Assembly (NCBI RefSeq): GCF_003704095.1
Contig: NW_020846942.1
Location: 372,001 to 436,000, forward strand
Source: Pocillopora damicornis
Lineage: Eukaryota
Length of the DNA stretch: 64,000 nt
Direction of reading: 5' to 3'
The position numbers and the translations under genes are program-made. Shown here piece by piece: positions 1 through 51,917 of this stretch. Below the pieces are notes generated by a model that did not search any database, was not told the DNA's origin, and saw only the letters and a list, made by a program, of their open reading frames with translations. Every line of letters begins with the position of its first letter. Positions within the stretch are counted from its first letter, which is position 1.

Positions 1-239
1 AGTATCAATACCAATATCAAAAAAAAACATCAGTATCATACTCATTATCAAATCAATTTGGAAAAATGGTTTATTACTGGTCTACAACTGCTTATAAGAC
101 CTCTCACTGCCGTCTGTTCAGTCAGCGAGCAGAATCTCATGTTTCAGCCTATGTCTCCATTGCAGCCAATTAAATGTAAAAAGTTATTCAAACCCCTATT
201 ACCAAACAAATTGCTCATCATATCACAGACTTTTCCTAC

Positions 240-3200
240 CTCAATATAATGTCGAAGTACATAGTGCACCAGACCATTTTCTGCTAAATTTACAAGTTGC
301 TGATGAAATCTCCAAAAGGATCCTGATCCTATCTTTCCATATAACACAACAGCTATGGAGTTGTTTTCAGATTTAGGATAGTGGTGATCAAATTCAAAAC
401 CCTGCACCAAGGGTCTATATTCATGAAGAAGAAAAGACAACAACAAAATGTTTGACTAAAAATATTTAAAAATTACCAATAACAGAATACAATATATATG
501 AAATTTAATTAAAAGAGCAATGTTCTTTCAGCGGAAAGCCAATTTGTTTTTCTCATGCATCTGAAACTTGAGCATTAGAACTAGAAACATACATGTTTTC
601 TGCTTGTTTGATGAGAGAAACAGCTTCTGTAATGTCACATATTGTGCTACTGCCAAGCTGAACAAAAGCCTCACAGTCTGGTGCTGGGAGATCATGGGCA
701 ACCTGATGAAAGAATGAAAAATGTACCAAATAAAATCATATAACTGTTAGGCTCAAATGCCTGAGTGTAGATATGCACACTGCAGAGTCATAACAACCCA
801 TGGTACTAACAGCTTTGTAATATGAGTTTTGGATTACAAACTAAGTTTCAAAACACCTAAATACTGAACAGCAAAGATAATAACTAACTATTCAGCAGAC
901 CTTTTGAAATCTCACCTTATTGAACAGTTCCACCCTGGGGGAATAATACCTCAGTGACAATGAGAATTGCAAGAAATTTAAACCTATCGGAGCTAGCAAC
1001 TGGCCTGCAGTTTTTAAAACATGTTTATATTCATCTGAAATCAAAACAGAGTAAAATACAACATTAAAAACTTATTCAACACTGTGGATAACAGCTCAAA
1101 AACCATCTTTTCACTGTTTACACCCCTTCAGTGCCTCGCATCTAATTTCTCCTTACAATATATCACCACTGAATCAAACATTGAGTCGTGAGAATAAAGG
1201 AAAAGATCCCCAACCTATAATGTTCTTGATTATTAAAATTCTCCTTGTCAGTACCATAGGAAATGTATAGAGAATGGTATAGAGAAACTGTGTGTTGATA
1301 TTATGGCAAAAAGGGTTAAGTAACAACCAGGTGCCAGTTGTTCAAAGGATGGGAAATGCTATCCACTGAACAAATCTCTATCTGGTGGATAGCATATAGT
1401 ATATTTTGTTGGCACTTATCCCATGAATAGCAATTTATCCATTAGATAGAGTTATCCAACCTTTGAAAAACTAGAGCCAGGCCTTTTAAACCTTTAACTC
1501 CCAGATCAAATTTATAATTCTCCTTACTGTCAACCATACAATTCTTATAATGTTAGTTCCGAGAATTTATTATTGGATCAACTAATTATCCCCAAATTGA
1601 TAATTTTCTTTATTCTCATTTCTTTCTCTGGTTGATATTGAATAGATATTGCAAGGAGAAATTCTGTCTTGGTCACTCATGGGAGTTAAAAGGTTAATGC
1701 AGGATTAAGTCAATGAAATAACATCAACTGTTGAACTGAAAAATTAGGAATCTTATTCTTTTGTTATCATGACATTGATTGTAGCTCCTTGGTATACTTC
1801 ACACAATAATTACACCAAAAGAAAATAATCATTCATTACCTAAATCATGACTGAATGATTTATCTTGACATGAATCCACAAACTTCCAAAATTTTTCATT
1901 ACTCTCTGCTGCTAAATATTCACTGAAATTAAAAAAAAAACATCTTATTCCCAGGGTGAGCTGCGTTACAGTACCTATCACTCTTGTCCAAAGAGTGAAG
2001 GACAATTTTCCAAAATTTCTTGAATATTCAGAAATGTGCAGTTGTCTGCGGAGGAGCCTTTTGATCCCCTTGTGTCACCTTCTTTGTATCATGGTCTGGT
2101 TATTCAAAATTTCTAATCATTATATTCATGTATTATATTCATTCAGCTAAAACACAAACAAAAAGTGAAAACTAACTAAGAAAGTAGCAATACTATTACA
2201 AAAGGGTAATTTGATATTATCAACTGAGTTGATATTAAAAATGTAATTTGGCCACCGTAAAGGGTTTCAAAGCTGACATTTTGAGCATTAGCCCTTGATC
2301 AGAGCAAAGCCCTTCCTTCTCACTCTGACGAAGGGTTAACGCTCGAAAGTCAGCCTTGTAACCCTTTATTGTGGCCAATTTACGTTATCACCCTAAATTA
2401 CCCTGTTCTACTCTCCCACTGACGCAGCAACACAGTTTCCTTAGAAACTTACCCCCTAAACACTATTATAAGACTGAGTACATCTGAACCCTTTAAACAA
2501 CTTTCAAATAAATGTGTGTAACACTACTTTAGATAATAAAATTTAGCACCAATACAATTCTAAATTGACATGAAGCGAAAGAATAGTGTAAAGTTCTGAG
2601 AGAATAAGCAACATAGCAGCTAAATGTCTTAGTATAAATTAGCCCAGGCTGGTGATATTTAGCCAGAGCATTCTATGTAGCTGTAGAAGAGCTCTCATAT
2701 CTCTAGTCTTAGGAATATCCTGGGAGTTATGCTGTTTTTTATTTGCTTTTATTCTGATTTATTTTGAAAATAACCCTGTTCTCAACCAACCTTGCTTCAA
2801 GCAGAAGAGGTGTCGATCCCCATCTTGCATCTAGAGAGGCTATTATTGATTTAGAGCTACTTGATTTGCAAAAGGATTGGTGGACTAACGAAAGAAGGGT
2901 AAACAAAGTGGCCACCGTAGTACACATTACCTGCAGAAAGAGTGAAGGAGTTTTAAATCATCTGACGTAGAAAGAGCATGCAGTCGGAAACTTCCGCTAA
3001 TTTGTTGAACAATTTCGTTGGCGATTATAAATTCTCCTCACTGCAGTACGTGCGTTGATTATGTCCGAAAAGTTCCAATAAAAAAATTAAATTTGGGCGG
3101 AATGTGCTACATAATATAAAAAAATCAAAGGTTACATCAATGTACATGTACATTAGTACGTATTACGTGAATCTTAATTTAAAGCAGCACATTTTTCAAT

Positions 3201-3544
3201 CAATTTCAAACAAATAAAATACCACTTAAAGAAACACAGCTTCATTTGAGATGAGTGTTGGAAAACTTAGGCTGCAAGGTTCGGGTTAAAAAAAATGAGC
3301 ACAAATCACCGAAAATCTGACTTGCAATAAAGCTCACGCCAGCCGGTCTTCTTTCATTACAAACTGATCATGAATAACTGAAAAACAGATCATTTTAACC
3401 AATATTACTAAACACAATCATATAAAATACAAGCGGTAAACAATGTATTCATCCAATCTTATATGTCAGGATTCAGCCTTCAACAAAGAAAGAAATCAAT
3501 ACATTTCCTACCCCTGCGTTGCTCAGACACTTTTTGGCCGCCAT
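240..3544 (-). CDS. UGGT: UDP-glucose:glycoprotein glucosyltransferase, 5' exons (gene continues off the left edge)
   Basis: Phase-compatible GT-AG exons 3544-3512, 2930-2791, 1922-1840, 1034-916, 702-593, 414-240. They translate to a signal peptide, then KSIIASLDARWGSTPLLLEASEYLAAESNEKFWKFV, LNFLQFSLSLRYYSPRVE and FEFDHHYP..VVLYGKIG..FHQQL..YVLRHY, which match the UGGT N-terminus. Confidence 0.9.
1329..1480. mobile_element. MITE with GGYCCAGTTGTTCAAA-like TIRs (second copy ~45591-45740)
   Basis: Imperfect inverted ends (gccagttgttcaaagg / cctttgaaaaactagagc), internal ATCCA/TGGAT repeats, and a related copy in a UPF3 intron. Confidence 0.6.
1486..1697. mobile_element. TTAA-flanked piggyBac-type MITE
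   Basis: Reads ttaa-acctttaactccca ... tgggagttaaaaggt-taa. It is the reverse complement of the copy at 40811-41021. Confidence 0.75.
2203..2458. mobile_element. Dispersed repeat carrying two inverted, decayed minimal hammerhead-ribozyme motifs (Penelope/retrozyme-like)
   Basis: Plus-strand motif CTCTGACGAAGGGTTAACGCTCGAAAGTCAGC at 2323-2354 and an inverted degenerate copy at 2271-2305. Flanks are shared with ~38043-38590, ~42985-43096 and ~57451-57890. Confidence 0.65.
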
Positions 3545-4419
3545 CTTGGAAAGAAAGCCAATGCAGTGTAACCACGTCGCTGGCGTTAATTTTATGTGGG
3601 GGAGTGGGAGAAAGTTTCTTTCCAACGTACTTGATGATGAGGCCAGACGATTTCTGTCCCATTGAGCTCATTCCCATTCTTGATATCCCACTTATCTCTC
3701 ATTTACCATTTACCATCCATTCACTCCCACTAATCCATGGGCCTGGACTTCCTCACAATGACCTTTCGGTACCATTCATGATGGAAGGGGGGGGGGGGAG
3801 TAATGCTGACGTGAATTTTTTTTAAAACAAAACTTACTCCAGTTTAGTTATTTTGTATAATAGCAGTGCTTAATAGGTAGCTAAACAGGGAATATCACAG
3901 GAAATAAACAATAAGAGAGTACATTCCTTCCCTCGTCTCCACAGACCGAGAAAGCCTGGCACAGTCTACTTTTAGAAGGATTTTAAAAGACACATTCCGG
4001 ATGATAGATCGTGCTAACCAATCAAAATGCTTTGCTTCGTTGCTTTAATTAACTGTCATTCCGAGCCCAAGTGTTTTCAAATGACAGTGAACAGAGATTT
4101 CTAAGTTCTTCTCCTTAATTGTATCGTTAACAGATCAAGGTAATTGTTTTAATCCGTCTTTGAGGTTCACAGGTACGACAAGGGGTAGACAATTAATACT
4201 GCTAAAGGTAAATCTACCTTTAAAGTGGCTTATATCTTTTCTCTCCTTTATATTAGTTCTGCGATGCTTTATAACCCGATGGTGACGCACCAATATGGAT
4301 GAATTTGAATGCCCTTCAAACGGCTTTCTTGTGCCACAAAAGAAGTTTCCTTATATGTTTCTTTCAAGTTTGTCCAGTGACATATCTAAGTTCATAGGCA
4401 GTGGTGAGATTAAAACAAA

Positions 4420-5830
4420 GACCATTCATTTTCAAAATATTCGTGTTAACCTTTAATAAGCATCTTTGTTTGCATGTGAAAAGTGGACAAATTGAATATT
4501 CATGCATAAATGCAAATTTAATGATCACGTAATCTTCTGTTTTGAGAGCATTCAGCAAAATAATCGCATTTATTGGTATTAATCAGTCAGTTGGGGAATA
4601 AAAGTTTCGATCATCTTTGCTAAAGATGATTTTTGGCCTGTAAAAGAGTATTTGTAAGAGTAATTTGCATATTCGTGAAGTTTATTATGTTGCAAAAATT
4701 TTGTAGTGTCGAGTTTCCAAATCCGTTTAACTTTTATTTCCTTGTGTGTTCCATTTTTCGNNNNNNNNNNNNNNNNNNNNNNNNNNNNNNNNNNNNNNNN
4801 NNNNNNNNNNNNNNNNNNNNNNNNNNNNNNNNNNNNNNNNNNNNNNNNNNNNNNNNNNNNGTCGACACAATGCCGGAACTAGAATGTTCGAGAAGAATGG
4901 TTTGAGAAACAGAAAAATTCTCTTTCATATGTGAAAGAGGATTCACTTCCATTTACGCGTTCTTTTCAAATTTCATGTCGCCGTTGATAGAAGTAATTGA
5001 TGATAATGATAATGCATGCGAACATTCTGGACATGTTTACATTTGCACCAATGTAGCACTATCAAATAGCTCCAGAGATTTATCGATTTCATAAATACCA
5101 ACTTTTATTCTCTCTCCCGATTTGCTTGATAAATTTAGGCGACAAATATTAGAATTGGTCGCGCAAAACAGAAGTATGGTTTCCCTGCACTAACTAGTAG
5201 GGGCTTGATTAATGCAGAATAATTATTGAAGCTAAAATCACTGTCATCTTTTCTCCTGCTACACGTCCATCAACCTGTTCAATGGAAAAAAATCCTCCTA
5301 AAAATAAACGTTTTATAGTAAAGCGCATGAGAGCTTTAGAATAGGACGCTATAGAAATTTTTGTATGATTATTATTATTATCCATATTGAAAACACTTCT
5401 GTGAACCCTTTAATAAGCATCTTTGTTTACGTGTGAAAAGTGGACAGATTGAATAATCATGCCTAAATACAAGTTTAAAGATCACGTGATCTTCTGTTTT
5501 GAGAACATTCAGCAAAATAATTGCATTTATTGGTACTAATCAGTCAGTTGGGGAATAAAAGTTTCGATCATCTTTGCTAAAGATGATTTTTGGCCTGTAA
5601 AATGGTATCTTGTTTGAATATGAAAACTTGAAATTTGCATATTGGTGAAATCTATTATGTTGCAAAAATTTGGTTGCGTTGAGTTTTCGAATCCAATTAA
5701 CTTTGTTTATTATTATTTCCGTGAGATCCACATATCCTGCACTTGTTACTGCGTGTTCTATATCTAAAAAACACTTTTTTCCGAATCCGTTTAACTTTGA
5801 TTATTCTCGTTTCCTTGTGTGCTCTATTTT
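4420..5830 (+). repeat. Duplicated TRPA upstream segment (~4420-4760 vs ~5380-5830)
   Basis: A long shared block (ctttaataagcatctttgttt...aatcagtcagttggggaataaaagtttcgatcatctttgctaaagatgatttttggcctgtaaaa...) occurs on both sides of the gap at 4761-4860. Confidence 0.8.
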
Positions 5831-6317
5831 TTGCGTGATAGAGGACATTGAGTCACCGATGACAAGTCGTCTGCCGCCTATGAATTCGAATTAATGTCTG
5901 TACTACGTTGATTGTCCGACTTAAGTATGGAAGCTTCTTTCGACCAGAAAATAAATGTTGTATACCTCGACGAAAGTCGCAGAACTCCTGTGCATCGTGC
6001 TGCTCTGGATGGTAAGCACGAACAGGTGGAAGAAAAAGTACGAGTCACCTCCGGACTGGATGACCAAGATGAACAAGAAAGGACCCCACTGCATCATGCG
6101 ACCGAACACGGACACAGGTACCTTTGCCCGGTTTATCTCAAAGAGATTTAAGGTTAAGTGTCATAATGTGAAACGTATGATTCCGAACACACAGTTGGTG
6201 GAGCCAAACACAGTTTTCGTCCCCTTTGATTCTGATCAGCGAAAATAATACTTACTGTAAAATCTACAGGTTGCAGTGGATGTGTAGTTATTAATAAGAG
6301 GGTCTTGATGGGGTGTA

Positions 6318-7557
6318 GCTTTTATGGCTAACGCTTAAAAATACTGGCCAATCTATGGCTAACGGTTAATATCTTTCCAATGTGGTCGACCAATGGTTAC
6401 CGCCATTGAGACCCTATTTATAGAATCAAACTGTAGAATTCTTAAAAAGTTTTGAATTTGAAGATTTTGAAAGAATGAATCATTGAAAAAGTGAAGTATA
6501 AGAATTGACACCAACTGAAGTAAATGAAAGGGCTACACTGGAAAAATAAAGTAAGTGCATTGCTTTCTGTTGTATNNNNNNNNNNNNNNNNNNNNNNNNN
6601 NNNNNNNNNNNNNNNNNNNNNNNNNNNNNNNNNNNNNNNNNNNNNNNNNNNNNNNNNNNNNNNNNNNNNNNNNNNNNNNNNCTCTAAGCACCAAACATAA
6701 GAGCAGATTTTATCTTAATATTCCAAAGGGATAACTAATATTACAAGTTCCCTTCTTTCACGAGGAATTGAATTTTAGACCATTAGTCTTGAATNNNNNN
6801 NNNNNNNNNNNNNNNNNNNNNNNNNNNNNNNNNNNNNNNNNNNNNNNNNNNNNNNNNNNNNNNNNNNNNNNNNNNNNNNNNNNNNNNNNNNNNNAGCTTT
6901 TACGGCTAACGCTTAAAAATATTGGCCAATCTATGGCTAACGGTTAAATTTTTACTCTTCGCGGCTAATTCCATTTGGCCGATTGGCGGTCAATGGTTAC
7001 CGCCATTGAGACCCTATTTATAAAATCAAACGGTAGAATTCTCAAAAAGTTTTAAATTTAGCGATTTTAAAAGAATGATTAATTGATAAAAGGAAGTATA
7101 AGAATTGACAACTGAGGTAAATGAAAGGGCTACACTGGAAAAATAAAGTAAGTTCATTGCTTTCTGTTGTATGAGAAACGGTGGCCAAAGGGTTGAAGTT
7201 CTGGGTTCTATCCTTGGCATGGTTGCTGTGTTGTGTTCCAGTACAAGACACACGCATCTCCCACAGCGCCTTTCTCCAACAAAAGTTATATATGGGTACC
7301 GTTGAACTGTCAGAGAAACCTGACAAAACGTTATAGGGGTCAACGGGGGAGGGGGGTAGCCCGAGATGGGCTATCATACCCTTCTGGGGGTATAGCCAAT
7401 ACTTGTGCTTGCTCTATGCTACGGCTGCCACGATAAGTTTCGACTCTCAGGGCACCAAACATGAGAGCAGATTTCACCCTTATTATTCTAAAGGGATAAC
7501 TAATGTTACAAGTTCCCTTTTTTCACGAGGAATTGAATTTGAGACCATCAGTCTTTA
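6318..7557 (+). repeat. Duplicated TRPA intron-1 segments separated by gaps
   Basis: 6318-6575 matches 6895-7172, and 6681-6794 matches ~7444-7557. This implies additional, incompletely assembled gene copies. Confidence 0.8.
7180..7460 (+). mobile_element. Degenerate tRNA-derived SINE (related copies ~24590-24740, ~44120-44270, ~50510-50740)
   Basis: A/B-box-like head (ggtggccaaagggtt...ggttctatcc) followed by the body tgtgttgtgttc...atgggtaccg..gaactgtcag..aaacctgacaaaa. The body recurs as a reverse complement at ~50590-50700. Confidence 0.6.
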
Positions 7558-10226
7558 ATCCACCATTGCAACTGTTCGGTTGCGTTTTCTCTTGGAAAAA
7601 TGAAAATAAGATTAAACATTGAACCAACACAAAGCGTAGATGTTTGAGTTTTCGTTTTCTACATGCAGGAAAGTTTGCCACACTCTGTTACAACATGGCG
7701 CTAACTCTTCTATTAAGGACAGAGAACACTGGACACCACTAATGAGTGCATCAGACCTGGGCAAGGAACAGTCGTGCCAAGATATACTCACTGTTAATCC
7801 CGAGACTGATGACGTGAATATGGATGGAGAAACAGCATTGCATATTGCGTGTAGGAGAGGACATGTGGGTGTTGTCAATCTGCTAATGGATTACGGGGCA
7901 AGTTTGAATGTTTGTAACAAAGATGGTGTAACGTGTTTTGAGACAGCCGCCAAGTCAGGAAAGAGCGAAGTTGTGTTTGCAATGATAAAGCATAAAAGGT
8001 ATGAACGGTCTCTCCAAACTGAGCTGTTATCTACCAGTTAAACTCAAAGTTTTAATGGCAGGAAGTGAGAGACTCGACTTGCACATGACAGCCGAAAAGT
8101 AAAAGTACAGAAGAGCGTAAGTAAAGCTGGGCAAGCTGGGCTATGAAAACAACGGTCTCCTCTTCGTTTTGGTGCTACGATTAAGACGTTTTTCTTGCGT
8201 TATATTTTAAGATAGCTAAAAATGGTTAAGTAAATTTTCAAAACCAAGTCTTAGATGGAACGTAGCTTTAATGCCATTCTTTCCTCTGTTTTCTTGTATC
8301 AATGGAAATTTTAGACTCTTTCTCAAATAACAGTCGTAATTATTTTTCTGACACATAAGGTCAGTTCAGCAGAGCCAAAGCCTCTTAGAAACACCCCTAT
8401 GTTTAACCTTATGTAAGTTTCACCCCAAGCTAAGCTCGGTTCCCCCTTTTTTTTAATTGAATTGCAAAGCTTTACTAAAAATCTCAGACGAACTAACCCA
8501 GGATCTCCTGCACTTTGTTATAGCTGGAGATTTTTTGATACGTTTTGTTAAGGAAACACACGAAAAGTGTGTTAATGTCCATTCATTAATAATTAATATT
8601 TTAGGATAAACCTCTTTATGAGCCACCTTGAGCTTCCTTCCTCGGACAACCTAAAGAAAATCTGTCTAGGTTAAGATATAATTTCAAGATTTATTAGACT
8701 TAGGGGTCATATGATTGATTGAGTTTGGTCGGGCGCACGGGTAAATACTTGACTTTGACTCTGTTTTATTGCTTCTGAACAGATGGATGGAAATAATGGA
8801 ACACAAGGATAAGAAGGGCCTTACCCCCATGAAGCTTCTCATAAAACACTTCCCAGAGAGTGCACAGCTGGTCATGGATTACTGCATCGATCGATCAGAG
8901 ACAGAAAGTTCCGATGATCCAAATTTTACCGTTACTTGCAACCTCCGTTTCCTAGACCCCAATCCTACTCACACCACTTGCCTGAGAGAAAGCCGTTTCT
9001 TTGGACCGAGCACCATGGTGAAACACGAGCGTAGAGAATTACTCGATCATCCTTTGACACAGGTCTTGCTGAATAAGAAGTGGTCTTCTTTCGGGCGCTT
9101 GGTGTTCTTCTTTAACTTTATGTTCTATTTTGTCTTTGTTGTCATGATTACAGCTTTCTTAATCCGATTCATGCAGAACGGTGACAAAGAATTGGGAGAT
9201 TATTTTATTTATGTATATCCAATAGCATTTTTACTTATAGGCGTCCAGTTCACCAAGGAAGTTATTGCAATACTTGTCCAGAGGCTTCAGTATTTCACCA
9301 CTTTAAACAATCTCACTGAATGGTTACTCTACAGTACGACGACTTCATTCATGGTGTCACTTTTCATTTTCGATCTAATATTTTCGTTATCCGGCCGTGA
9401 TAAGCGTGATATTGTTTATCCACAATTCATCTGGGTGTTGGGTGCCATTTCGATTTTTCTTTGCTATGCGAACCTAGTCTTGGTTCTTCGTCGGTTGAGT
9501 CTGGTTGGAATCTATGTCACCATGTTTATAGAGGTCGGTTTTAAAAGTACTTCTGATCTTCTTTGTCTTGTTCTTTGGGTTCTCCATGGTGTTCTACGTC
9601 CTCTTTAAATCAGAGGTAAGATGAAATAAGAGATAAGTGTGTATGTGAGTAAATTTGCTTCTGTTTGTGATTTATGTGAGTTTTTTCCCTTTTTTATCAT
9701 GCTCGTAATCTAAAACCGAAAGTAAAAATATTCCTCATACTGTACCTTTTCGCGCCGTTTATTGACTCGCTCCATAGCAACAAGCCTGACAGATTTGGTT
9801 ACAGTAATTTTCAGTGCGCTTTGACGACATATAAAGCTCGCTCGGTCTCGTCAAGGGTATCTTGGAATCATGACTCAACTAAAATCGCTGCATTTGTAGT
9901 AAACGAAATATACAGTAATAGTAAACAATTAACAAAAGTCCATTAAATTGTCCGGGTTTGCCATAAGGATCTATTCCCTTCAGTAATACGCTTATGGAAA
10001 AGGAATGAGCATTGGCTAAAGCGCTGAGAGTCTCTCGTATTTCCTCCACAGGAGTCGGTATTTAAGCATCTTGGATTTGCCTTACTGAAGGTGACAGTGA
10101 TGACAATTGGAGAGGTTGACTTTGAANNNNNNNNNNNNNNNNNNNNNNNNNNNNNNNNNNNNNNNNNNNNNNNNNNNNNNNNNNNNNNNNNNNNNNNNNN
10201 NNNNNNNNNNNNNNNNNNNNNNNNNN

Positions 10227-11821
10227 CATAGCAAAGGAAAATCGAAATGGCACCCAACACCCAGATGAATTGTGGGTAAAGATTAAGACGCTTCTCAACA
10301 CCGAATAACGAATATAACAGATCGATAATGAAAAGTAACGTTATGAATGAAAGCGTCGTACTGTAGAGTATCCATTCAGTGAGATTGCCTAAAGTGGTGA
10401 AATAACGAAACCTCTGGACAAGTATTGCAATAACTTCCTTAGTGAACTGGACAAATATAAGTAAAAATACTATTGGATACATAAAAAAATCTCCCAATCC
10501 TTCATCACCGTTCTGCATGAATCAGATTAAGAAAGCTGTAAACGTGACAACAAAGACAAAATAGAACATAAAGTTAAAGTAGAACACTAAGCGCCCGAAA
10601 GAAGATCATTTCTTATTCAGCAAGACCTGTGTCAAAGGATGATCGAGTAATTCTCTACGTTCGTGTTTCACCATGGTGCTCGGTCCAAAGAAACGGCTTT
10701 CTCTCAGGCAAATGGTGTGAGTAGGACTGGGGTCTAGGAAACGGAGGTTGCAAGTAATGGTAAAATTTGGATCATCGGAACTTTCTGTCTCTGATCGATC
10801 AATGCAGTAATCCATGACCAGCTGTGCACTCTCCGGGAAGTGTTTTATGAGAAGCTTCATGGGGGTAAGGCCCTTCTTATCCTTGTGTTCCATTATTTCC
10901 ATCCATCTGTTCAGAAGCAATAAAACAGAGTCAGAGTCAAATATTTCCCGCTCCGGCCGACCAAACTCAATCAATCATGTGACCCCTAAGTCAAACAAAT
11001 CTTGAAATTGTGCCTTAACCTAAACAGATTTTCTTTCGGTTGTCCAAGGATGGAAGCTCAAGATGGCTCATGAAGAGGTTTATCCTAAAATACTAATTAT
11101 TTATGAATGGACACTAAAACACTTTTCGTGTGTTTCCCTAACAAAACGTATCAAAAAATCTCCAGCTATAACAAAGTGCAGGAGATCCTGGGTGGTATTT
11201 ATCTGAGATTTGTATTAAAGCTTGGCAATTCGATTGAGAAAAAGGGGGAACCGAACTAAGTTTTGGGTGAAGCTTACATAAGGTTAAACATAACTGTGTT
11301 TCTGAGAGGCTTTGGCTCTCTGTGTCAGAAAAATGATCACGACTGCTTTTTGAGAAAGAGTGGAGAATTTCCATTGATATAAGAAAACAGAGGAAAGAAT
11401 GGCACTAAAGCTACATTCCATCTAAGGCTTGGTTTTGAATTTTTTATTTTACCATTTTTAGCTATCTTAGAAGCAAAGAAAACGTCTTAATCGTAGCGCC
11501 AAAACGAAGAGGAGACCGTTGTTTTCATCGCCCAGCTTGCCCAACTTTCGTAATGCTCTTCTCTACTCTTACTTTTCGGTTGCCATGTGCAAGTCAAGTC
11601 TCCTACTTCCTGCAATTAAAACTTTGAATTTAAATGGTAGATACCAGTTCAGTCTGGGGTAACCGTTCATACCTTTTATGCTTTATCATTGCAAACACAA
11701 CTTCGCTCTTTCCTGCCTTAACGGCGGCCTCAAAACACGTTACACCATCTTTGTTACAAACATTCAAACTTGCCCCGTGATCCATTAGCAGGTTGACAAC
11801 GCTCACATGTCCTCTCCTACA
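10227..11821 (-). pseudogene. TRPA-like channel, copy 2 (inverted fragment with two nonsense codons)
   Basis: Paralogous to copy 1 exons 2-3. It has NKK-TGA where the others have TGG (10606-10608) and LI-TGA where the others have CGA (~10522-10524). Gaps bound it on both sides. Confidence 0.85.
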
Positions 11822-12346
11822 NNNNNNNNNNNNNNNNNNNNNNNNNNNNNNNNNNNNNNNNNNNNNNNNNNNNNNNNNNNNNNNNNNNNNNNNNNNNNNN
11901 NNNNNNNNNNNNNNNNNNNNNGAACTGGTATCTACCATTTATACTCAAAGTTTTAATGGCAGGAAGTAGGAGACTCGACCTGCACGTGACGGCCGAAAAG
12001 CAAGAGTATAGAAGAGCATTACGAAAGTTGGGCAAGCTGGGCGATGAAAACAACGGTCTCCTCTTCGTTTTGGCGCTACGATTAAGGCGTTTTCCTTGCT
12101 TTTAAGATAGCTAAAAATGGTAAAATAAATTTTCAAAACCAAGCCTTAGATGGAACTTAGCTTTAGTGCCATTCTTTCCTCTGTTTTCTCGTATCCATGG
12201 AAATTCTCGATTCTTTCTCAAAAAGCAGTCGTGATCATTATTCTTACACCAAAGGTCACTTCAGCAGAGCCAAAGCCTCTAAGAAACACCCTTATGTTTA
12301 ACCTTATGTAAGCTTCACCCAAAACTTAGTTCGGTTCCCGCTTTTT

Positions 12347-13560
12347 AACTCGTGAATTGCGCGCATGCGCAAGAGCGAGTTGTAGATACGATGTGGGGAA
12401 TAGCACTCGCTCGCTCGCTCGCACGCTCGATTAGTCGATTCCTGTAAACTTTTTTTCGATTTTAGGCTTTTAAATGCATTTGATAGTTTTTGGCGAGCAA
12501 TAAACAAACGAAATGGCGACCTTTGTTGCTAAGAATAGTGGTGGGGTGAAAAAGAAGCCAATGATAACCTTAAAAGAGTTTTTTTTTTCGTTTTAGTTTC
12601 AACAAGCGGCGCAAGCGACTAGCAGGCATGCAAGGATTCACACTGAAATAACAGAACAACCTTCGTTTTCCATAAAATTGTAATTTACAATCCTTGAACT
12701 TGTAAACAATCCGAAGATTCATTGAAAATATCACTTACTGCGAAGCGCTCGGAGTTTACAGATGTTCAAAAGCTTCTTCTGTTATGGCGTGATTGAGGAC
12801 AAAATCAATCATTACGTTTCGTATCGTGTGTTTTTCCTGTGTGAAGCAACAAAAGATGCCAGCGACAGACGAAATTACAAGTTAACACGAAAATCAAATA
12901 ACACCTAAACAAACAATTTCAGTAACCGATTTTCAGTGAATTTTTAAAGAACAATTTTCTTTTAAGTTTCAATACAATTTGAAGATTTAAAATACATATT
13001 ACGTACTAAGATGCGAAAGTTATATACTACAAAATAGATAAATAGGCCTGAAATGAAATTCTATCTTGTTATTGATTATACGTTGCCTTGCACGTGACTA
13101 AAATCTACCCAGGCGGAGATCCAAAATGACGGTGGCAGTCTTGGCTTAGTTATATCGCTCAAAACTCGTTCCCGTTTGTCTCATTTGATAAAGAGGGAAT
13201 TGTTAATGTTTTCAATAAGACAGTATTGCCTTGATTTTCTAATATTTACAATGACAGACAGTAAATTTCACTTTTCACCCACATTCACTTCCAACCTTTT
13301 CTTTTGAACCAGAAACAAAAATGATATACGTTTAAAACACGACATCATCCACCTTGTCAAATGTAATAGCATGATCATTTCAATTGTAATGCCTTCTTAT
13401 CCCAAAGTTACTTTGTTTCTTTGCTACATTAGCGAGCACTGAACTACTGCTCGTACTCTAGATATGACAATCAACCACCAAATTCCCTAAACCAGGTAAC
13501 ATTAAACATAATCCAAAAAATCATGTGTCAATTCACGAGTTTGCTCACAGAGCACTTTGA
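12347..13560 (+). mobile_element. Non-autonomous Helitron2/Helentron (HINE)-like insertion in a TRPA copy 3 intron
   Basis: Absent from the homologous introns of copies 1 and 2. It has a 13-bp inverted repeat AACTCGTGAATTG (12347-12359 / 13529-13541) and a 3' hairpin TGCTC-aca-GAGCA (13542-13554). It sits in a T-run with no TSD. Confidence 0.7.
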
Positions 13561-13901
13561 TTCTCAATCGAATTGTCAAGCTTTAATAAAAACCTCAGAT
13601 AAATACCACCCAGGATCTCCTGCACTTTGTTATAGCTGGAGATTTTTTGATACGTTTTGTTAGGGAAACACACGAAAAGTGTGTTAGCGTCCATTCATTA
13701 ACAATTAGTATTTTGAGATAAACGGATAAACGTCTTCATGAGCCATCTTGAGCTTCCTTCCTCGGATAACCGAAAGAAAATCTGTTTAGGTTAAGATACA
13801 ATCTCAAGATTTGTTAGACACAGGGGTCAATGATTGATTGAGCTTGGTCGGGCGGATCGGGAAATATTTGACTCTGACTCTGTTTTATTGCTTCTGAACA
13901 G

Positions 13902-16177
13902 ATGGATGGAAATAATGGAACACAAGGATAAGAAGGGCCTTACCCCCATGAAGCTTCTCATAAAACACTTCCCAGAGAGTGCACAGCTGGTGATGGATTA
14001 CTGCATTGATCGATCAGAGATAGAAAGTTCCAGTGATCCAAATTTTACCATTACTTGCAACCTCCGTTTCCTAGACCCCGGACCTACTAACACTATTTGC
14101 CAGAGAGGAAGCCATTTCTTTGGACCGAGCACCATGGTGAAACACGAACGTAAAGAATTACTCGATCATCCTTTGACACAGGTCTTGTTGAATAAGAAGT
14201 GGTCTTCTTTCGGGCGCTTGGTGTTCTACTTTAACTTTATGTTCTATTTTGTCTTTGTTGTCATGTTTACAGCTTTCTTAATCCGATTCATGCAGAACGG
14301 TGATACAGGATTGGGAGATTCTTTCATGTATCCAATAGTATTTTTACTTTTTGGCGTCCGATTCATTAAGGAAGTTATTGCAATAGTTGTCCAGAGGCTT
14401 CATTATTTCACCACTTTAAGTAATCTCACTGAATGGATACTCTACAGTACGACGGGTTTCTTCATGATTTCACTTTTCGCTTTCGATTTTACAATTCCGT
14501 TTGACGACCCTGAGAAGCGTCATAATCGTTATCCACAACTCATCTGGGTGTTGGGTGCCATTTCGATTTTCCTTTGCTATGCGAACCTAGTCTTGGTTCT
14601 TTGTCGGTTGAGTCTGGTTGGAATCTATGTCACCATGTTTATAGAGGTCACTAAGTCGGTTCTAAAAGTACTTCTAATCTTCTTTGTCTTTTTCTTTGGG
14701 TTCTCCATGGTGTTCTACATCCTCTTTAAATCAGAGGTAAGATGAAATAAGAGATAAGTGTGTATGTGAGTAAATTTGCTTCTGTTTGTGATTTATGTGA
14801 GTTTTTTCCCTTTTTTATGATGCTCGTAATTTAAAACCCAAAGTAAAAATATTCCTCATTCTGTACCTTTTCGCGCCGTTTATTGACTCGCTCAATAGCA
14901 ACAAGCTTGACAGATTTGGTTACAGTAATTAATTAAAATGTCACCTGATTTTGGGCTCAATATGGGTGCAGCAAATGCCTAATCGTACCTTTTCAGTGCG
15001 CTTTGACGACATATAAAGCTCGCTCGGTCTTGTCAAGGGTATCTTGGAATCATGACTCAACTAAAATCGCTTCATCTTCTAACGGAGCGCGCCAAAAAGG
15101 TACGATTAAGGATGATATAACGTTATAGTAAGCGAAATATGCAATAATGATAAACAATAAACAACTCCCAAGATCTGATTGTTAATTCTCCCCTCTAGNN
15201 NNNNNNNNNNNNNNNNNNNNNNNNNNNNNNNNNNNNNNNNNNNNNNNNNNNNNNNNNNNNNNNNNNNNNNNNNNNNNNNNNNNNNNNNNNNNNNNNNNCG
15301 GTTGCATGTTTCACCTACAGGTGGGTCTTGCCGTGGGTGATATCGACGCAATTCGCCGCAATGCTGCGTTTAAAAGGATGGCTATGCAGGTCATGTATAT
15401 CGTTAGGGTCGAAAACAGCTTCCCGAGGTGCATCTCGCGGCGTTTTCGCCATCCAGAAGTAAGTTTGCGGCCAAATCGTCGAACTCTGAGGAAAAGATAT
15501 GGCGTGATTGCCATTCTGATAAAAAATCACACGTAAATCTCAAAAATGTCAGAAAATTCTAAAAAGCAGCTTTACAACGACTCCAGCAATGTCTACTTCT
15601 CTTTAATATCTTTACCATTCATTATCCAGCCAGAAAACTGATCAGGTAGAAGTTGTCATTTTGATCTAACACTACATTCTCGTCACTGATTGACAGGAAA
15701 ATTTATAGCAACTTGAGGGGAGAAGTAACAATCACATCTTGGGAGTCAAATTAAGGGTTAAAATGTTCACTTCACAAAATTATTTCTTTGTCTTCGATAT
15801 TCAGGTTGATGCTTTTTCTTGGAATGAAGACATCTTCGGGCTTGGACTTTTCTCCTCGCGCCAAAGAAGAACCGTCCCCCGGTGTAGTTTTGGATTATAC
15901 TGAGATTAAGAAAAAGCTTGACCTTACTGAGAAACGCGTCGAAACATTGGTCGATATGATGGAGGTGCAAAACGCTCTGCTCAGAGAATTAGTAAAAAAG
16001 ATTGATCGTGGGACCAAGATGGACAAGAAGAGCATGGAAATGGAAGGATCGACTGTGGAACACGAGTATGGGAGCACATCAGCTTCAGGAGAGAAATGGA
16101 TCCTTGACGACCAGCAGCCATATGAGATTAAAACACAACCACACTTGCATAAATGTAGAAAGATCACTTATGTTTAG
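13902..16177 (+). CDS. TRPA-like channel, copy 3 (TM exon intact; TRP-like helix and coiled-coil exons lie after a gap)
   Basis: Exon ~13902-14736 runs from the linker to S5 (GIYVTMFIEVTKSVLKVLLIFFVFFFGFSMVFYILF). Exon 15321-15496 has VGLAVGDIDAIRRNAAFKRMAMQV (cf. TRPA1 IGLAVGDIAEVQKHASLKRIAMQV). Exon 15805-16177 is a coiled coil. The donor at 15497 reads AT instead of GT. Confidence 0.8.
14980..15108. mobile_element. Small MITE with TA-bounded 14-bp TIR
   Basis: TAATCGTACCTTTT ... AAAAGGTACGATTA. Confidence 0.65.
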
Positions 16178-18253
16178 TCATATTGAGCAGCCATATATCA
16201 GTATTTACTGAAACAATAGCTAACGTTGAAGGCGCGCTTTGATTGGTGACTCAAACTCCGAATAGTCTTTGCTACTCACTTCCGACCAGCTCGTGCAAGC
16301 GTTTGCGCCTGAAAATATTGTAATTTTGCAGGAAAAAATAAGTTAAAATAATCTTTTTGTACTATGTTATCTCACTGTTTTAGTGTTTACTAAAACAACC
16401 ATTTACCTCAGCATCGGTGGCTAGCGGTGGATATTTGCCCTTTTAGTGGATAGTTGTTAATTATACTATCATTGTACCTTATTTAGGGTGAAGGAAAAAG
16501 AAACTTTGATGTAACCATCACACTTTTAGGATTAGCAATAACAAAAGTGCCGTGAATAAACACAACATTTTACGTTAGAAGCAGTTATGCAAATGTTTTG
16601 GGAGAAATAATAAACATGACAGAATCTGTGTGCTTGTTTTCTTAGATATGTAAGGTACATTGAGCCAAAGGAGACCATTTTTTTTTTATAAATAGGCGAT
16701 CAAGGGAACTCCAGCAAGGAGTGAACATACAAAATACGCACTGTGAGCGCCTGTTAGATAAACTTGAAATCCCAATTGATAATATATTCTGTGTTCAATT
16801 ATATGGCAAGCAAATAAAACTTCCAAATCGTGATAAATGCAAATTATGTAAACCCCACATGTAAATGTATAAACGCATAACAACTACTGGATCCAGGAAT
16901 CCATTCTTAAATGGAATAAACCCTTAGAAGGTACAGAAATTTTAGATAGCCAAATTTCCCCAACATAAAGCTCTTACTCAAAACCATTTTATGTAATATA
17001 TTACGGTTTAATAGAGTATTTCGCGGGCTTTTATTTTTTTTTTTTGCTTAATTTTACTTATTTCCACTCCCGATGCATGTCAATAAACATGTCACTATAA
17101 CTTTGTTCCAGACTCGACCGAAATACATTTTGGCCTTTCTATCAATTTCTACACTAGTTCTCGTTTCACTTCGAATCCCTGTGATACGCCGCCTATAAAT
17201 AGCTATTTCGGTGTTTAATTAGGGTTTTTGTTCCAATTTTCCGAACACCTGGAGAAATAAAAGCTGTAAGTGAATCACATCGCCCCATTGGCGCCCGATA
17301 TCTGCAAGGAATATTCATAGACTTTTCTCTGTGCGTTTATTACTCAATTGTTTTCGTTTTTTTTGTGTAAAATACAAGTCAGAACTCGCAGTATACATTA
17401 TTACAATTACTGAGTGGTACTCTTATGTAAATAAGTATGAAATGACTTGAATCTCAAAGCATCAAATCCTCAAGTCTAACTTTAAGTCATTATTAGCGAG
17501 ACCCAAGAACGACAAGATTCATAGAGAACATCTATCATGTCAACAACTATGTGTTTAAGCGTAAACAAATGAGTTGCTGATAGTCAAGGGTAAAAAACAC
17601 ATGTTTCGCTGTTTTCTGAGTAGCACGTCTATCTTTTACATTTTATGCAAAAATCATAAATAATTTTGATAATCGGTGAAACTTGGTTTTTTATAAGAGA
17701 AGCAATTTAACCCCAAGTGGCAAAGCAGATGTCTTTAGGCATTAGTTAATTGTCCTAGCACCCCTTCATCGCCAGAAATATCCACAAAATCTGTCATTCC
17801 GTCGATCTCGCGCAGCTAAAATTATCAAGTTATTTGCCTGTCACATTTTTTTCATTTTGAACTCTAACTTAGGATACGTGATCATGCGTCGGAAATTTTA
17901 AATTATTTATTGTAGCTTAAAGTAACTATTGAAGTATATTTACATTGTAATTCGCGGGTAAACTCTCACTGGGAAGAAATTCGCCACAAAGTGAGTTCTT
18001 GTCTTCGAGCGAGAAATAAATCGCTAATTAATCGACACGGACAACACGAAACGGATTTTCGGCGAGACAGTATATGAAGACATCGCTCACCTGAGGTGTT
18101 TCTCGAGGTTGGAGTCAATTTTAAGAGCGGCACCTTCGTTAAAATTCAGACTGCAAAGTAACAGCATAAGAATAATATTATTGAAAGACAAACGGCGCAA
18201 TTGAACGTGTAAGGCAAACAGCCCGCGGAGTGAACCGTAAGAATCATGGTACA

Positions 18254-19408
18254 ATGACTTCAAACGCTACTTTCTCGATGACAAAGAAAGAAAGTTCCGC
18301 CAGTTCAAGAATTAGGATCAACGTAAGCGGAACAATGTTTGAAACTTTAGAAGAAACCTTGTCGAGGTACCCAGACACTCTTTTAGGATGTCCAAAGAAG
18401 CGTGTTCAATATTTTGATAAAAGAAATGACGAATACTTTTTCAACCGAAACAGACTGGCTTTCGATGCGATTCTGTTTTATTATCAGTCGTATGGGAGAC
18501 TAGTTAGACCCGACATGGTGCCTGAGAATGTTTTTATCGATGAGGTACGTTTCTTCCAAATTCGAAGCTCTTACACTTCTACTCGAGATAAAATCGAGCG
18601 TGCTCTTTTAGGAAAAGACGAGGATTTACCACAAAACCTCATACAACGTAAGATATGGCTGTTGTTTTCAAATCCCGAATCATCATACGCAGCAAGAGTT
18701 CTGGCAGTTTTATCTGTTATTATCATTCTTCTTTCGGTCGTTATACCATGTTTTGAGTCGTCATCTGGGGGCATCAACTCTTTAAACAACAATAGGAGCA
18801 CGTTTTTCTCGTCCTTGGAGATGGCCTGTTATATTTGGTTTACCTTCGAGTTAGTGGTTCGTTTTTGCAGCGCACCTCATAAACTGCGGTTTTTTCGCTC
18901 AATGCTTAACATCGTTGACATAATCAGCGTCGTTCCGTACTATGTTCTTCTAACAATGCAAAACACTCGTGCACCGTTATCGGTGCTGCGCGCGGCAAGA
19001 ATGCTGCGTGTTTTACGGATATTCAAACTTTCCCGCTACTCCAGTGGTATGCGGATATTGATATTTACGTTTTATACGAGTATGAAAGAGTTGGGAATGT
19101 TTTTTATCTTCATCTCCATCAGTGTCGTCGTATCATCGAGCGCAGCGTACTACGCCGAGACTGGTTGCGAAAAATGCGCTTTTACGAGCATCCCTGACGC
19201 GTTTTGGTGGGCGGTAAACACGATTACAACGGTGGGTTACGGCGATCAGTACCCGCTGACAGCCTCTGGTAAAATGGTGGGTTGTTTGCTGACCGTGTTT
19301 GGTGTTTTAATCATTGCTCTTCCAGTTTTCCTCTTTGTCGCAAACTTCAACAAAGTTATGAACGCCAACATGGCGGCAATTGACCGCGCTGGAGAAAAAG
19401 AACGCTGA
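18254..19408 (+). CDS. Intronless Shaker/Kv1-family voltage-gated K+ channel, probable regulatory subunit
   Basis: T1 domain (RINVSGTMFET..YPDTLLG..YFFNRNRLAFDAILFYYQS), S4 LRAARMLRVLRIFKLSR, pore AFWWAVNTITTVGYGD, and S6 IIALPVFLFVANF. Confidence 0.93.
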   Translation: MTSNATFSMTKKESSASSRIRINVSGTMFETLEETLSRYPDTLLGCPKKRVQYFDKRNDEYFFNRNRLAFDAILFYYQSYGRLVRPDMVPENVFIDEVRFFQIRSSYTSTRDKIERALLGKDEDLPQNLIQRKIWLLFSNPESSYAARVLAVLSVIIILLSVVIPCFESSSGGINSLNNNRSTFFSSLEMACYIWFTFELVVRFCSAPHKLRFFRSMLNIVDIISVVPYYVLLTMQNTRAPLSVLRAARMLRVLRIFKLSRYSSGMRILIFTFYTSMKELGMFFIFISISVVVSSSAAYYAETGCEKCAFTSIPDAFWWAVNTITTVGYGDQYPLTASGKMVGCLLTVFGVLIIALPVFLFVANFNKVMNANMAAIDRAGEKER

Positions 19409-22027: not shown

Positions 22028-23685
22028 ATGGGTGATCATGTCAGAAATCCCTTTGACGACATTGATTCCGGAGATGATGAGATAGAAAAGCCACCGACAC
22101 CTGAAATCCATCATGGCGGTGATTCGCCAAGGGCGCCAGGTTTTAGCGATATTTCAGACAACGAAGATGAAGAAAAAACCGGCGAAGAAGCCACCAAACA
22201 ACAGCCTGAAGATAGCAACGATAGTTCTAACGTTAGTTCCCCAGGGGATAGGGAAGATAATACAAAAGAGGATATCATTACGGAGGCGAAACCTGACGCT
22301 AGTCCTCTTTACGATCAGGAAATGTCGCCCGTTTCATCAACTTCGGCAACAGCTGACGACCAGGAGAACACGGTCGCCAAAGAAGATCACAAAGAGAAGG
22401 ATGCTTCCTTAGAAGCTGAGCAATTACCACAAAAAACAAATCAAGAATCTGAAAGAAAACAAGAGAATTTAGAAGGAACGGAAGTCGAAGGTGAACTTGG
22501 AGTTCTTAGTCAGCTGTCTACACCAAGAGCAGAGATGGGCGAAGGAGAGCCCGAGGGAAATTTAAATGTAACAGAGAACACAACCGAAAGATGGCGAACT
22601 TTTTCTTCAGGGGCAGCAACGGACGATGATTTAGAAATGCCAATATCACCTTTAGGTCTTGGACTCTCAGGACCTGAATCAGAAATAGTTGATGACATTT
22701 TGAAAAGTGATGTCTCCAAGCTTCTTCCTGGCAATGAAGACGAGTCTAAGGAAGGACCAATAGGTATGATTGATTTTGAAACGGTAGGGCACACTTTCTA
22801 TCTGTGAACCAGTACAATAACTCACTCAGGATGTTGGGTAGAATGAGAAACGCTTGGAAATTTCAAGCCAAAGATGAGTGATTTACAGACTTGTTGGGTT
22901 GTTGATCGGTTGTTTTGCTGGCAAGCCGTTATAAAGTGTGGCCTTTTGTTTTATGAAACAGCTATAGTCTAATGGTATACTGAACCCTTTCTTTCACCAA
23001 TCAGAGTGCACCTAGTATCTTTTATGTAAAGTAATACTTAACAAACTCATTTTATCAACCCCATTGATGAAAACCAAATTATGTTGACATTATATGAGTT
23101 GCCCAGTTTTTTCCCTGAGCTCTCAGGGTATTAAGCAGTAAGTGAACTGCATGTAAAGTTTTGCCTGAAGGTACAGCCACCAATTACACCATCAGCAACT
23201 GAATATGGAAAAAGTTATTGAAACCCCTGCATTTGTTTTATTTTGTCTCTGACTGGTTGGAAAGGTGGTATTAGGTTATCAAACCAGTTATAGAGAAAAT
23301 TGAAAAAACAAAATCAGAAAAAAAGAGAAGCAAAGAGCTTAGGTCATTAGATGTAGTTCTAAGGTATCCCGGATCAGCATCAGTATCTGGGCAATTGCCC
23401 ACCTACCCCTCCCCTAACCCAACATTAACCCTAACTTGTCATCAATTGACTGTTGTTGGTTTAGGGGAGGGGTAGGTGGGCAGTTGCCCAGATACTGATA
23501 TTGATCCAATATCCCTTACAGCTGAAAAAACTGTCCAGCAGTGAGTATAGGAAACTATAAACATGGTGATGTAGGCTGGTTACTCTATTGAGACATTCCT
23601 CTGATCTCACCTTCAAAATAACCACTTACTTCAACAATAAAGCCACCAACTCCAAAACTCTTTTACTAATGCTGCCTCTCTCATT

Positions 23686-51128: not shown

Positions 51129-51917
51129 AAAACCATCAATCCTTGTTTTTAATCTTGACGCCAAGTGCTAGTAACAAAGACTCCTCCGAAAAAAGGAATA
51201 CTCGATAATGCCACTTTAAAATTGCATGTTTAGACCCTTTTTTGCAACCGTTACGTCAGCAGTTATGTGCATTTAAAAATATAAATCTAATTATTGACGA
51301 CATAAAAAACAATTTTTCTTGCTTATTGTTTAGGAGTTTAACTTTTAAACAGAGCTAGCGTACAACAGTGACTTACAATTCCATGAAACTGGTGAGTTTC
51401 TGGCCGTAGTAAAACTGTGCGCGCGCTACTTACGGGTGAAAATTGTATATTACAAGGGAATTACTCTAGTTTGAGTTTACGATATACTGCACAGCAATAT
51501 TGATATCAGTATTCACAGCAGTGCGTTTGTTTTGTACTTCACGGAAACACGTAACATTTTCGGCAAACAGTTCTAATCAAGAAAAACTTGCGGATATATG
51601 ATTTAAAGAATACTAGTTATATTTCTGGTACCTTCAAGTTTTGTAGTCATCAGCTCAGAAGTCCCGTCCCCACTCTGCCCCGTCCACCCTTTGGATCCTA
51701 CAACAACCATGACCCTTCCTATATTTAGCAAACCACACCCCCATTCCCCACTACAATACATTTCGGCAGCTCTCGAACCGGACTACTCGAAAACCGTGAA
51801 TAATTGATTAACGAAACTAAGTGCCGATTGTGTTTGTGACAATAGGATCACGTGATCTAACTTTCTTGGAAAGCGCCTCGCGGTGGGAAAGTCTTGCTGT
51901 GACATTTGAGGAGGAAC

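Follow-up and report, generated by a model that had tools for sequence, protein, structure and literature searches.

A TRPA1-like channel gene array in the coral Pocillopora damicornis with signs of diversifying selection on the outer S3 helix and the S3-S4 loop

Results

Three copies of a TRPA1-like channel exon

The window analysed in this work is a 64,000-nucleotide stretch of the genome of the coral Pocillopora damicornis (positions 372001-436000 of contig NW_020846942.1, labelled C3577, in RefSeq assembly GCF_003704095.1, labelled G000, of 234 Mb in 4393 contigs), and the sequencing runs that contain this stretch are labelled as coral or marine metagenomes. It holds members of an array of TRPA1-like cation channel genes, in which one exon of 278 codons, extending from before S1 to S5, is present three times: copy 1 at 8783-9615 on the plus strand, copy 2 at 10227-10906 on the minus strand, where an assembly gap cuts it within S4, and copy 3, which is intact from the pre-S1 linker to S5, at 13902-14736 on the plus strand. 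A patch of 29 codons inside this exon (9342-9428 in copy 1, 10267-10353 in copy 2 and 14455-14541 in copy 3) is hypervariable among the copies, and the evidence presented below supports positive selection on this part of the sensor domain, its predicted extracellular crown. Searches of the assembly with the exon and with the patch DNA found only these three close copies, the next-closest paralogues being 36-59% identical.

The channel family was assigned from both sequence and predicted fold. When the large exon was searched with phmmer against PDB chains, TRPA1 of Drosophila and human was matched at E 5e-19, the next family being TRPV1 at 5e-4. Copy 3 was modelled with AlphaFold2 from an alignment of 71 sequences (predicted local distance difference test, pLDDT, 82.6; predicted template modelling score, pTM, 0.71), which was adopted in place of a shallow alignment whose model was unusable (pLDDT 45), and in Foldseek the resulting model had TRPA1 in all of ranks 1-14 (E 3.5e-9 to 2e-5), with TRPV appearing from 1e-3. 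The term TRPA-like, which had been used for these genes in a first-pass annotation of the bare sequence, is thus borne out. Pfam found no family at E <= 0.01 in the large exon, the relatives of which have precomputed PF00520 hits; exons were searched singly and not as a joined protein, and homology was established by sequence and fold comparisons with the PDB. Among named proteins, the 'TRPA1-like' proteins of Nematostella and Hydra are closest. In the numbering of the copy 3 exon, the model limits S3 to residues 172-197, the S3-S4 loop to 198-211 and S4 to 212-235, so that the patch (residues 185-213) covers the S3-S4 loop together with the outer half of S3, where the first-pass annotation had put it. 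The HMMER alignment to human TRPA1 agrees with this placement, the coral loop being about 11 residues longer than the human one, and homology to the topology of TRPA1 suggests that the patch is extracellular.

Further exons of these genes surround the three copies. Upstream of copy 1, ankyrin repeats are encoded on the plus strand within an open frame at 5912-6151 (Pfam Ank_2 and Ank_4), which is about 97% colinear with the independent contig L025, and within a second one at 7640-8041, where Pfam reports Ank, Ank_2 and others (E 1e-16). The latter contains the last ankyrin-repeat exon of the copy 1 gene (7640-7998), which starts somewhere inside the open frame and whose donor was placed by homology with the RNA-supported splice of copy 2; ankyrin repeats also lie in the matching position in the related loci L023-L035. 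Downstream of copy 1, the pore-loop exon starts at 10052 on the plus strand, and its first 25 codons (10052-10126), read directly and colinear with L025 up to 10126, precede a gap. After copy 3 and the gap at 15199-15298, an open frame at 15306-15536 (+) contains the exon for the end of S6 and a TRP-like helix, belonging to an unassigned array member; its translation (15312-15536 was searched with phmmer) matches TRPA1 chains only, at E 4e-7, aligned to the helix that follows S6, and the frame is 92-94% identical to L025 and L028. The same gene continues in a C-terminal open frame at 15788-16177 (+), in which a Pfam scan found no match and which is colinear with L025, L024 and L028; in these three contigs its counterpart precedes the 5' region of a further gene. 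Each gene would then have ankyrin-repeat exons and the large pre-S1-S5 exon, followed by separate exons for the pore loop, for S6 with the TRP-like helix, and for the C terminus.

All three copies are covered by copy-specific contigs (at least 95% identity, many without differences) in two DNA runs from different studies, and in the single-colony DNA run X6 the depth is alike for all of them, at about 13-15. The copy sequences are real, and artefact is limited to their arrangement. Copy 1 has its frame broken by an 8-bp deletion at about 9534-9537, which lies in the S4-S5 region and puts S5 out of frame; the deletion is absent from the near-identical exons L023 and L025 of other colonies. Copy 2 has in-frame TGA codons at 10606-10608 and 10522-10524, of which the second reads CGA (Arg) in runs X6, X15 and X17, where position 10524 is G. 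The first-pass annotation, in calling S4-S5 nearly identical, had passed over the frame break of copy 1, and it had overlooked the strand and the lesions of copy 2, which sits on the minus strand between two gaps.

As for expression, a contig of the polyA RNA run X15 joins 11673 to 10906 and omits the 766 bases between them, an intron at 10907-11672 with the ends CT..AC, that is, GT..AG on the minus strand; copy 2 is therefore transcribed and spliced. The upstream side of this joint is a gap-cut fragment of the copy 2 ankyrin exon (11673-11821, minus strand), identified by self-comparison and by the joint itself, from which the phase also follows: two bases of the split codon lie at the end of the ankyrin exon and the third opens the large exon. 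RNA-library contigs span the patches of copy 1 (9201-9456 and 9276-9449) and copy 3 (14274-14569 and 14422-14569), which by themselves are no proof of transcription because the same libraries also contain intron sequence.

Divergence of the patch among copies and colonies

The patch of copy 1 is of the type 'TSFMVSLFIFDLIFSLSGRDKRDIVYPQF', and its DNA is the same, without a difference, as that of the Tara contig L023. Between copies 1 and 3, 17 of the 29 patch codons differ, each of them with a change of residue, and at the 12 conserved residues the codons are the same; these counts, like the variants of the S1-S2 loop, are exactly those given in the first-pass annotation. Three different residues are found across the three copies at eight of the 29 codons. 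Nei-Gojobori estimates of nonsynonymous (dN) and synonymous (dS) divergence were 0.31-0.50 and 0.12-0.25 in the patch and 0.04-0.05 and 0.08-0.10 elsewhere in the exon, and the 22 nonsynonymous differences on 68.5 patch sites have a binomial p of 1e-8 when neutral divergence is set at about 0.08, the value from introns and all synonymous sites. The flanks had also been described as nearly identical, which is correct for the downstream intron of copies 1 and 3 (6 of 194 sites differ, 3.1%) but not for the upstream intron (34 of 327, 10.4%) or for the synonymous sites outside the patch.

A search with the copy 3 exon retrieved 37 exon-sized open reading frames from other samples, most of them in Tara Pacific metagenome assemblies, with identities of 82-96%; no exon-sized frame fell between 61% and 82%, the full-length annotated proteins of other pocilloporids lying outside the length range of that search. 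Their 90%-identity clusters hold 50-142 member sequences each. With the variant P0190, which has a frameshift inside the loop, set aside, the 38 aligned sequences contain 26 distinct patch sequences of about 10-12 types. Two of these types have 4-residue deletions; at the DNA level, the loop has two independent 12-nt deletions and the S1-S2 loop a 6-nt indel. Three modules vary in the alignment, namely a pre-S1 stretch, the S1-S2 loop and the S3/S3-S4 patch, and the part from S4 to S5 is almost invariant. The types of the S1-S2 loop and of the patch are associated (adjusted mutual information, AMI, 0.50), compared with 0.16 and 0.06 for the pre-S1 module against either of them. The patch types are stable: among the 40 best-supported of 90 differences between the runs and the window, none falls in the patches of copies 1 or 3, over which coverage is partial, and the patch of copy 2 shows a pair of indels in one RNA run.

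A distant paralogue was considered as the source of the patch and rejected, since patch DNA matches only the three copies, the next paralogues reach at most 59% identity and the conserved residues keep identical codons; the search of patch DNA against the whole assembly found no other donor site. A separate observation concerns L026 and L027, two contigs of one Tara sample, which have the large exon without codon differences and upstream flanks at 93% and 87% identity to the window, and which point to a very recent duplication or conversion, or to two haplotypes.

Tests of selection

The DNA of 14 loci was fetched and a 280-codon alignment of 15 distinct sequences was built, to which the GY94 codon model was fitted by maximum likelihood with our own code and partition-specific trees. 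Over alignment codons 184-215, omega (dN/dS) was 2.58 (p 0.0014), or 2.54 (p 0.0017) with the codon frequencies of the patch and 2.21 (p 0.006) with equal codon frequencies, and it rose to 5.2 (p 0.0015) in codons 184-199, the indel-free outer half of S3. When only the three window copies were used, the star tree of which raises no issue of topology, omega was 3.4 (p 0.016) in the patch and 0.92, not significant, in codons 1-183. Nine non-overlapping windows of 32 codons were also scanned along the exon, and only codons 187-218 passed Bonferroni correction (omega 2.8, p 0.0005); the window over the S1-S2 loop (codons 125-156) had an omega of 2.8 with p 0.03, which is not significant once corrected. 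In copy 3 the region under positive selection corresponds to 14446-14541, of which 14446-14493 encodes the outer half of S3 and 14494-14541 the S3-S4 loop, and the S1-S2 loop, the second variable module, lies at 14287-14340. The proposal of positive selection in the S3-S4 region made in the first-pass annotation therefore stands, omega being significantly above 1. Nonsynonymous diversity (piN) was 0.19-0.29 in the patch and synonymous diversity (piS) 0.04-0.175, with an intron diversity (pi) of 0.07-0.08. The density of nonsynonymous changes was 5.4 times higher in the patch than in the rest, and its tree length was 3.3 substitutions per codon, compared with 0.3-1.3 elsewhere.

Recombination among copies and alleles

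Nearest-neighbour scans showed blocks of exact identity that change partner along the exon. Copy 3, for instance, equals L024 over codons 26-120 and L022 from codon 126 onward, and L028 resembles in turn L029, copy 3 and copy 1. Half of the informative site pairs failed the four-gamete test, the minimum number of recombination events (Rmin) was 24 in 840 bases, and a permutation test of the pairwise homoplasy index (PHI) kind gave p 0.001. Recombination or gene conversion is pervasive, homogenising and shuffling the exon; the flanks are similar because of it, and part of the contrast between patch and flanks is thereby explained.

Order of the genes and state of the scaffold

Independent coral metagenome contigs establish that the array consists of whole genes arranged head to tail. 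The 28.6-kb contig L025 is colinear with window positions 1-10126 at about 97% identity; beyond the equivalent of 10126 it has about 1.2 kb that is absent from the window, then matches 15301-16197 (92-94%) and finally contains a sequence resembling 4861-5054, the 5' region of a further gene, so that it spans a whole gene of the copy 1 type. Contigs L024 and L028 both open with a C-terminal exon that belongs to a preceding gene in the same orientation. L024 is the orthologue of copy 2, 97.9% identical and with an intact frame. The head-to-tail arrangement follows from the run of L025 into a next gene and from these upstream C-terminal exons.

The order found in the window is, in contrast, a construct of the scaffold, in which fragments of copy 2, inverted, and copy 3 are set inside the first gene. 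At the gap 10127-10226, the left flank is the start of the copy 1 pore-loop exon (+) and the right flank is the reverse complement of copy 2 S4; at the gap 11822-11921, the copy 2 ankyrin exon (-) meets the intron upstream of copy 3 (+) at the junction of an inverted repeat (11239-11650 against 12346-11922, 89.7% identity). Neither gap is in frame or continuous, every boundary of a repeated unit falls on a gap, and no contig of the sequencing runs bridges any of the gaps, the run data being stored as short contigs that make depth and order weak evidence. The claim of a tandem array made in the first-pass annotation thus holds for the head-to-tail whole genes of L024, L025 and L028, and fails for the arrangement within the window, with its gaps and its inverted copy 2. 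According to the assembly paper, high-identity repeats were not assembled and scaffolds were built with HiRise (PMC6208414). The window scaffold is collapsed or mis-oriented here, and gene counts and calls of single-nucleotide polymorphisms (SNPs) made from the reference at this array are unreliable. Two other readings of the locus were discarded: a joint of 9201 with 10489 on opposite strands merely reflects the similarity of copies 1 and 2, and mutually exclusive alternative exons are rejected, because the repeated unit includes the ankyrin exon, intron and pore exon and independent contigs carry whole genes.

Other features of the window

The intron upstream of the copy 3 exon (11922-13901, plus strand; identified by self-comparison) contains at about 12361-13533 a high-copy repeat, with a contig word depth in the thousands in DNA runs. 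Contigs of DNA runs X12 and X6 have the empty site, with 12360 joined to 13534 and AAA between them, and the insertion is therefore polymorphic or missing from a sister copy. Another repeat, of very high copy number, occupies 15001-15198 and abuts the gap 15199-15298; many loose ends at about 15163 suggest the boundary of a dispersed element.

Upstream of the array, an exon at 144-446 on the minus strand encodes a Thioredoxin_12 domain such as UGGT-type glucosyltransferases have; this neighbour is present also in L025 (2955-3218), so that the 5' flank of the array is conserved. Directly downstream of the array, an intronless frame of 392 residues (18230-19408, +) with a BTB_2 tetramerisation domain and Ion_trans is a Shaker-type voltage-gated K+ channel gene. 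It is followed by an acidic low-complexity open frame of 259 residues without a Pfam match (22028-22807, +) and by two exons of a DMRT-A type transcription factor (34833-35324 and 36385-37359, +), which encode a DM DNA-binding domain (E 2e-22) as well as a DMA motif (E 8e-17) accompanied by a zinc ribbon at the C terminus. Further along, segments at 51877-52930, 55264-55806, 58278-59540 and 60978-61973, duplicated, partly inverted and 74-89% identical, contain Abhydrolase_3 exons of the arylacetamide-deacetylase-like kind and make up a further family of genes duplicated locally within the window.

Discussion

The genes described here form a young subfamily of TRPA1-like cation channels in a pocilloporid coral. 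The reading that we prefer, to which we give a probability of about 0.6, is that diversifying selection acts on the extracellular crown of the sensor-like domain in a young, recombining array of the birth-and-death kind. In such an array, unequal crossing-over and gene conversion among members and alleles would keep most of the gene similar and mosaic. The crown is the exception: it comprises the outer S3 half and the long S3-S4 loop, with the S1-S2 loop as a less clear case, and its sequences fall into at least 10 discrete types separated mostly by amino-acid-changing differences (omega about 2-5). Selection would most likely tune the action of a peptide, a toxin or another ligand on this outward surface, or else the set-point of gating; the position of the crown suggests such a function and such a selective agent. 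The chemoreceptor repertoire and the arms race with a toxin or pathogen, both proposed in the first-pass annotation, are guesses at this stage. Members would be gained and lost, and in the reference colony two of three copies are disabled, one of them still transcribed and spliced. The features of a birth-and-death array are the presence of three copies in the assembly and in single-colony runs, the disabled copies 1 and 2 and the frameshifted variant P0190.

Several results weigh against this reading. Two of the three reference copies are broken in the very exon concerned, and the patch region was picked after viewing the data. The loop alone (codons 200-215) has an omega of 1.8 that is not significant (p 0.17), and a tree-free lower bound for the patch, with 51 nonsynonymous and 11 synonymous changes, gives an omega of 1.36 (p 0.22). 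The patch has about 2.2 times the density of synonymous changes found elsewhere (11 on 20.5 sites against 38 on 159). Outside the patch omega is 0.5-0.9, which indicates weak constraint on the family as a whole. Differences at two or three bases are found in many codons of the patch and, with the 12-nt loop indels, mean that complex mutation events could inflate the nonsynonymous counts. The heavy recombination weakens tree-based and site-level inference of selection: the comparison of models M1a and M2a with partition-specific trees gave a likelihood ratio statistic of 32.6, with high-posterior sites scattered over the exon and no peak at the patch, and is weak support at most because an Rmin of 24 makes the test untrustworthy. 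The low bound, the non-significant loop, the synonymous excess, the recombination and the weak constraint are also what would be expected if no adaptive diversification had occurred and old divergence had simply persisted in a weakly constrained S3-S4 region where conversion stops at a poorly matching stretch. The unequal divergence of the introns downstream and upstream of copies 1 and 3 fits a conversion tract, and across the broader family on contig C1935 both the S1-S2 and the S3-S4 loop show poor conservation and no constant length. The first-pass annotation had itself held that proportionate synonymous divergence in the patch across more paralogues would mean that gene conversion had homogenised the flanks, and this has been found in part, with the raised synonymous density and the pervasive recombination of the flanks; a part of the patch-flank contrast therefore comes from old lineages that escaped homogenisation. 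Relaxed constraint, however, is unable to raise dN above dS, and omega is 2.2-5.2 (p 0.0014-0.006) in the patch and in its indel-free S3 half, and 3.4 (p 0.016) in the star tree of the three copies, where topology plays no part. Nor does it suit the codons with three residues in three copies beside conserved patch residues with identical codons, and we consider this main rival unlikely, though to be taken seriously.

A local mutational hot spot, in which indel-associated or multi-nucleotide mutation or templated micro-conversion mimics selection in codon models, would account for the codons that differ at two or three positions, the two 12-nt loop deletions and the 6-nt S1-S2 indel, and the long tree of the patch. 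It predicts a proportionate rise of synonymous changes, and these rose 2.2-fold against 5.4-fold for nonsynonymous ones; the strongest signal is in the S3 half that has no indels, the assembly holds no patch donor elsewhere, and types that are stable and identical across colonies indicate no ongoing hypermutation, all of which makes a hot spot very improbable. The types might also be mainly alleles under balancing selection at few loci, which would make the crown a polymorphic surface for the recognition of self and non-self, of symbionts, of pathogens or of the venom of competitors, and not a fixed repertoire of paralogues. The excess of at least 10 types across samples over the three copies of the reference, the 50-142 members of each 90%-identity cluster, the elevation of both dS and dN in the patch as in systems like the major histocompatibility complex (MHC), and the association of S1-S2 with S3-S4 types (AMI 0.50 versus 0.06-0.16 for the pre-S1 module) all agree with this. 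Three types coexist at similar depth in the DNA run of one colony, however, and one sample has the same exon in two genomic contexts, so paralogy certainly contributes; in addition, we know of no recognition system built on a TRP channel, and we judge a mainly allelic explanation improbable. We are only slightly less sceptical of a more specific proposal, in which the S1-S2 and S3-S4 crowns would form one co-adapted polymorphic recognition surface made of discrete cassettes under balancing or diversifying selection and shuffled by gene conversion, comparable to MHC or allorecognition systems, or to the target site of an arms race with a peptide toxin of a competitor, a corallivore or the coral's own venom. 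As for mis-assembled haplotypes or chimeras with a patch that is not biological, the 100-N gaps that break the locus, the inversion of copy 2 between two of them, the unit boundaries at gaps and the HiRise scaffolding around unassembled high-identity repeats (PMC6208414) could all raise that suspicion. It is largely refuted and hardly credible, given that each of the three copies has its own contigs in independent DNA and RNA runs of other studies and that other assemblies contain near-identical orthologues of each type, and in this the first-pass annotation, which had taken the copies as genuine, was right.

The preferred reading, of diversifying selection on the crown of a recombining TRPA1-like array, can be set beside several known systems. 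TRPA1 of human and Drosophila (6PQQ, 7YKR) is alike in the sequence and predicted fold of pre-S1, S1-S4 and S5, in the TRP-like helix and in the N-terminal ankyrin repeats, and the outer S3 helix and S3-S4 loop of the human channel align with the coral patch. Identity to the coral exon is only 22-28%, however, the S3-S4 loop has about 14-19 residues in the coral against about seven aligned residues in human TRPA1, and the coral has several near-identical genes with a hypervariable sensor crown, a comparison made with the full ankyrin count, the pore and S6 lying in gaps. Closer parallels are the TRPA expansions of cnidarians (among them the cluster on C1935 and the 'TRPA1-like' proteins of Nematostella), which share tandem TRPA-like genes and the same large pre-S1-S5 exon. 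The C1935 paralogues are old (36-59% identity), whereas the clade of the window is young (82-96%) and mosaic, with omega above 1 on S3 and the S3-S4 loop, and its S1-S2 loop is unusually short compared with those of the other TRPA-like paralogues of the coral. About ten of these older genes, at about 107-246 kb of C1935 and about 278 kb of C483, have acidic S1-S2 loops that are much longer, and their S3-S4 loops differ in length. Our literature searches found no paper describing the present array. In Acropora tenuis, a population-genomic scan singled out a TRPA1 homologue of that coral, for which balancing selection has been proposed (PMC11874183); that case differs in being a single gene with SNPs, one missense change affecting the TRP helix and an environmental association, with no multi-copy array and no S3-S4 crown (PMC11874183).

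In human TRPA1 the S1-S2 linker affects gating, and the tarantula toxin ProTx-I has been docked on the S1-S4 module (PMC5281607). Gating-modifier toxin sites, of which ProTx-I on TRPA1 and the S3b-S4 'paddle' of voltage-gated channels are examples, occupy the same surface, the extracellular ends and linkers of S1-S4, and are linked to the coral channels by position only. On a broader scale, MHC class I and II and the chemoreceptor arrays are multigene recognition families shaped by gene conversion and diversifying selection, and in general terms the coral array resembles them in its mosaics, discrete variable modules, dN above dS, raised dS and segregating pseudogenes. It differs in the scaffold, which is the sensor domain of an ion channel and not an immunoglobulin-like or G-protein-coupled receptor (GPCR) binding site.

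TRP channels are usually seen as conserved polymodal sensors with positive selection at few sites at most. In this array, in a reef-building genus sampled across the Pacific, the outward tip of the sensor behaves like the binding site of a fast-evolving receptor family. If the preferred reading is true, it would suggest that TRPA channels have an extracellular site for a ligand or toxin that has so far escaped notice, and it would provide natural loop variants for structure-function work, and a sensory or defence locus would join the fast-evolving tandem families that shape coral genomes.

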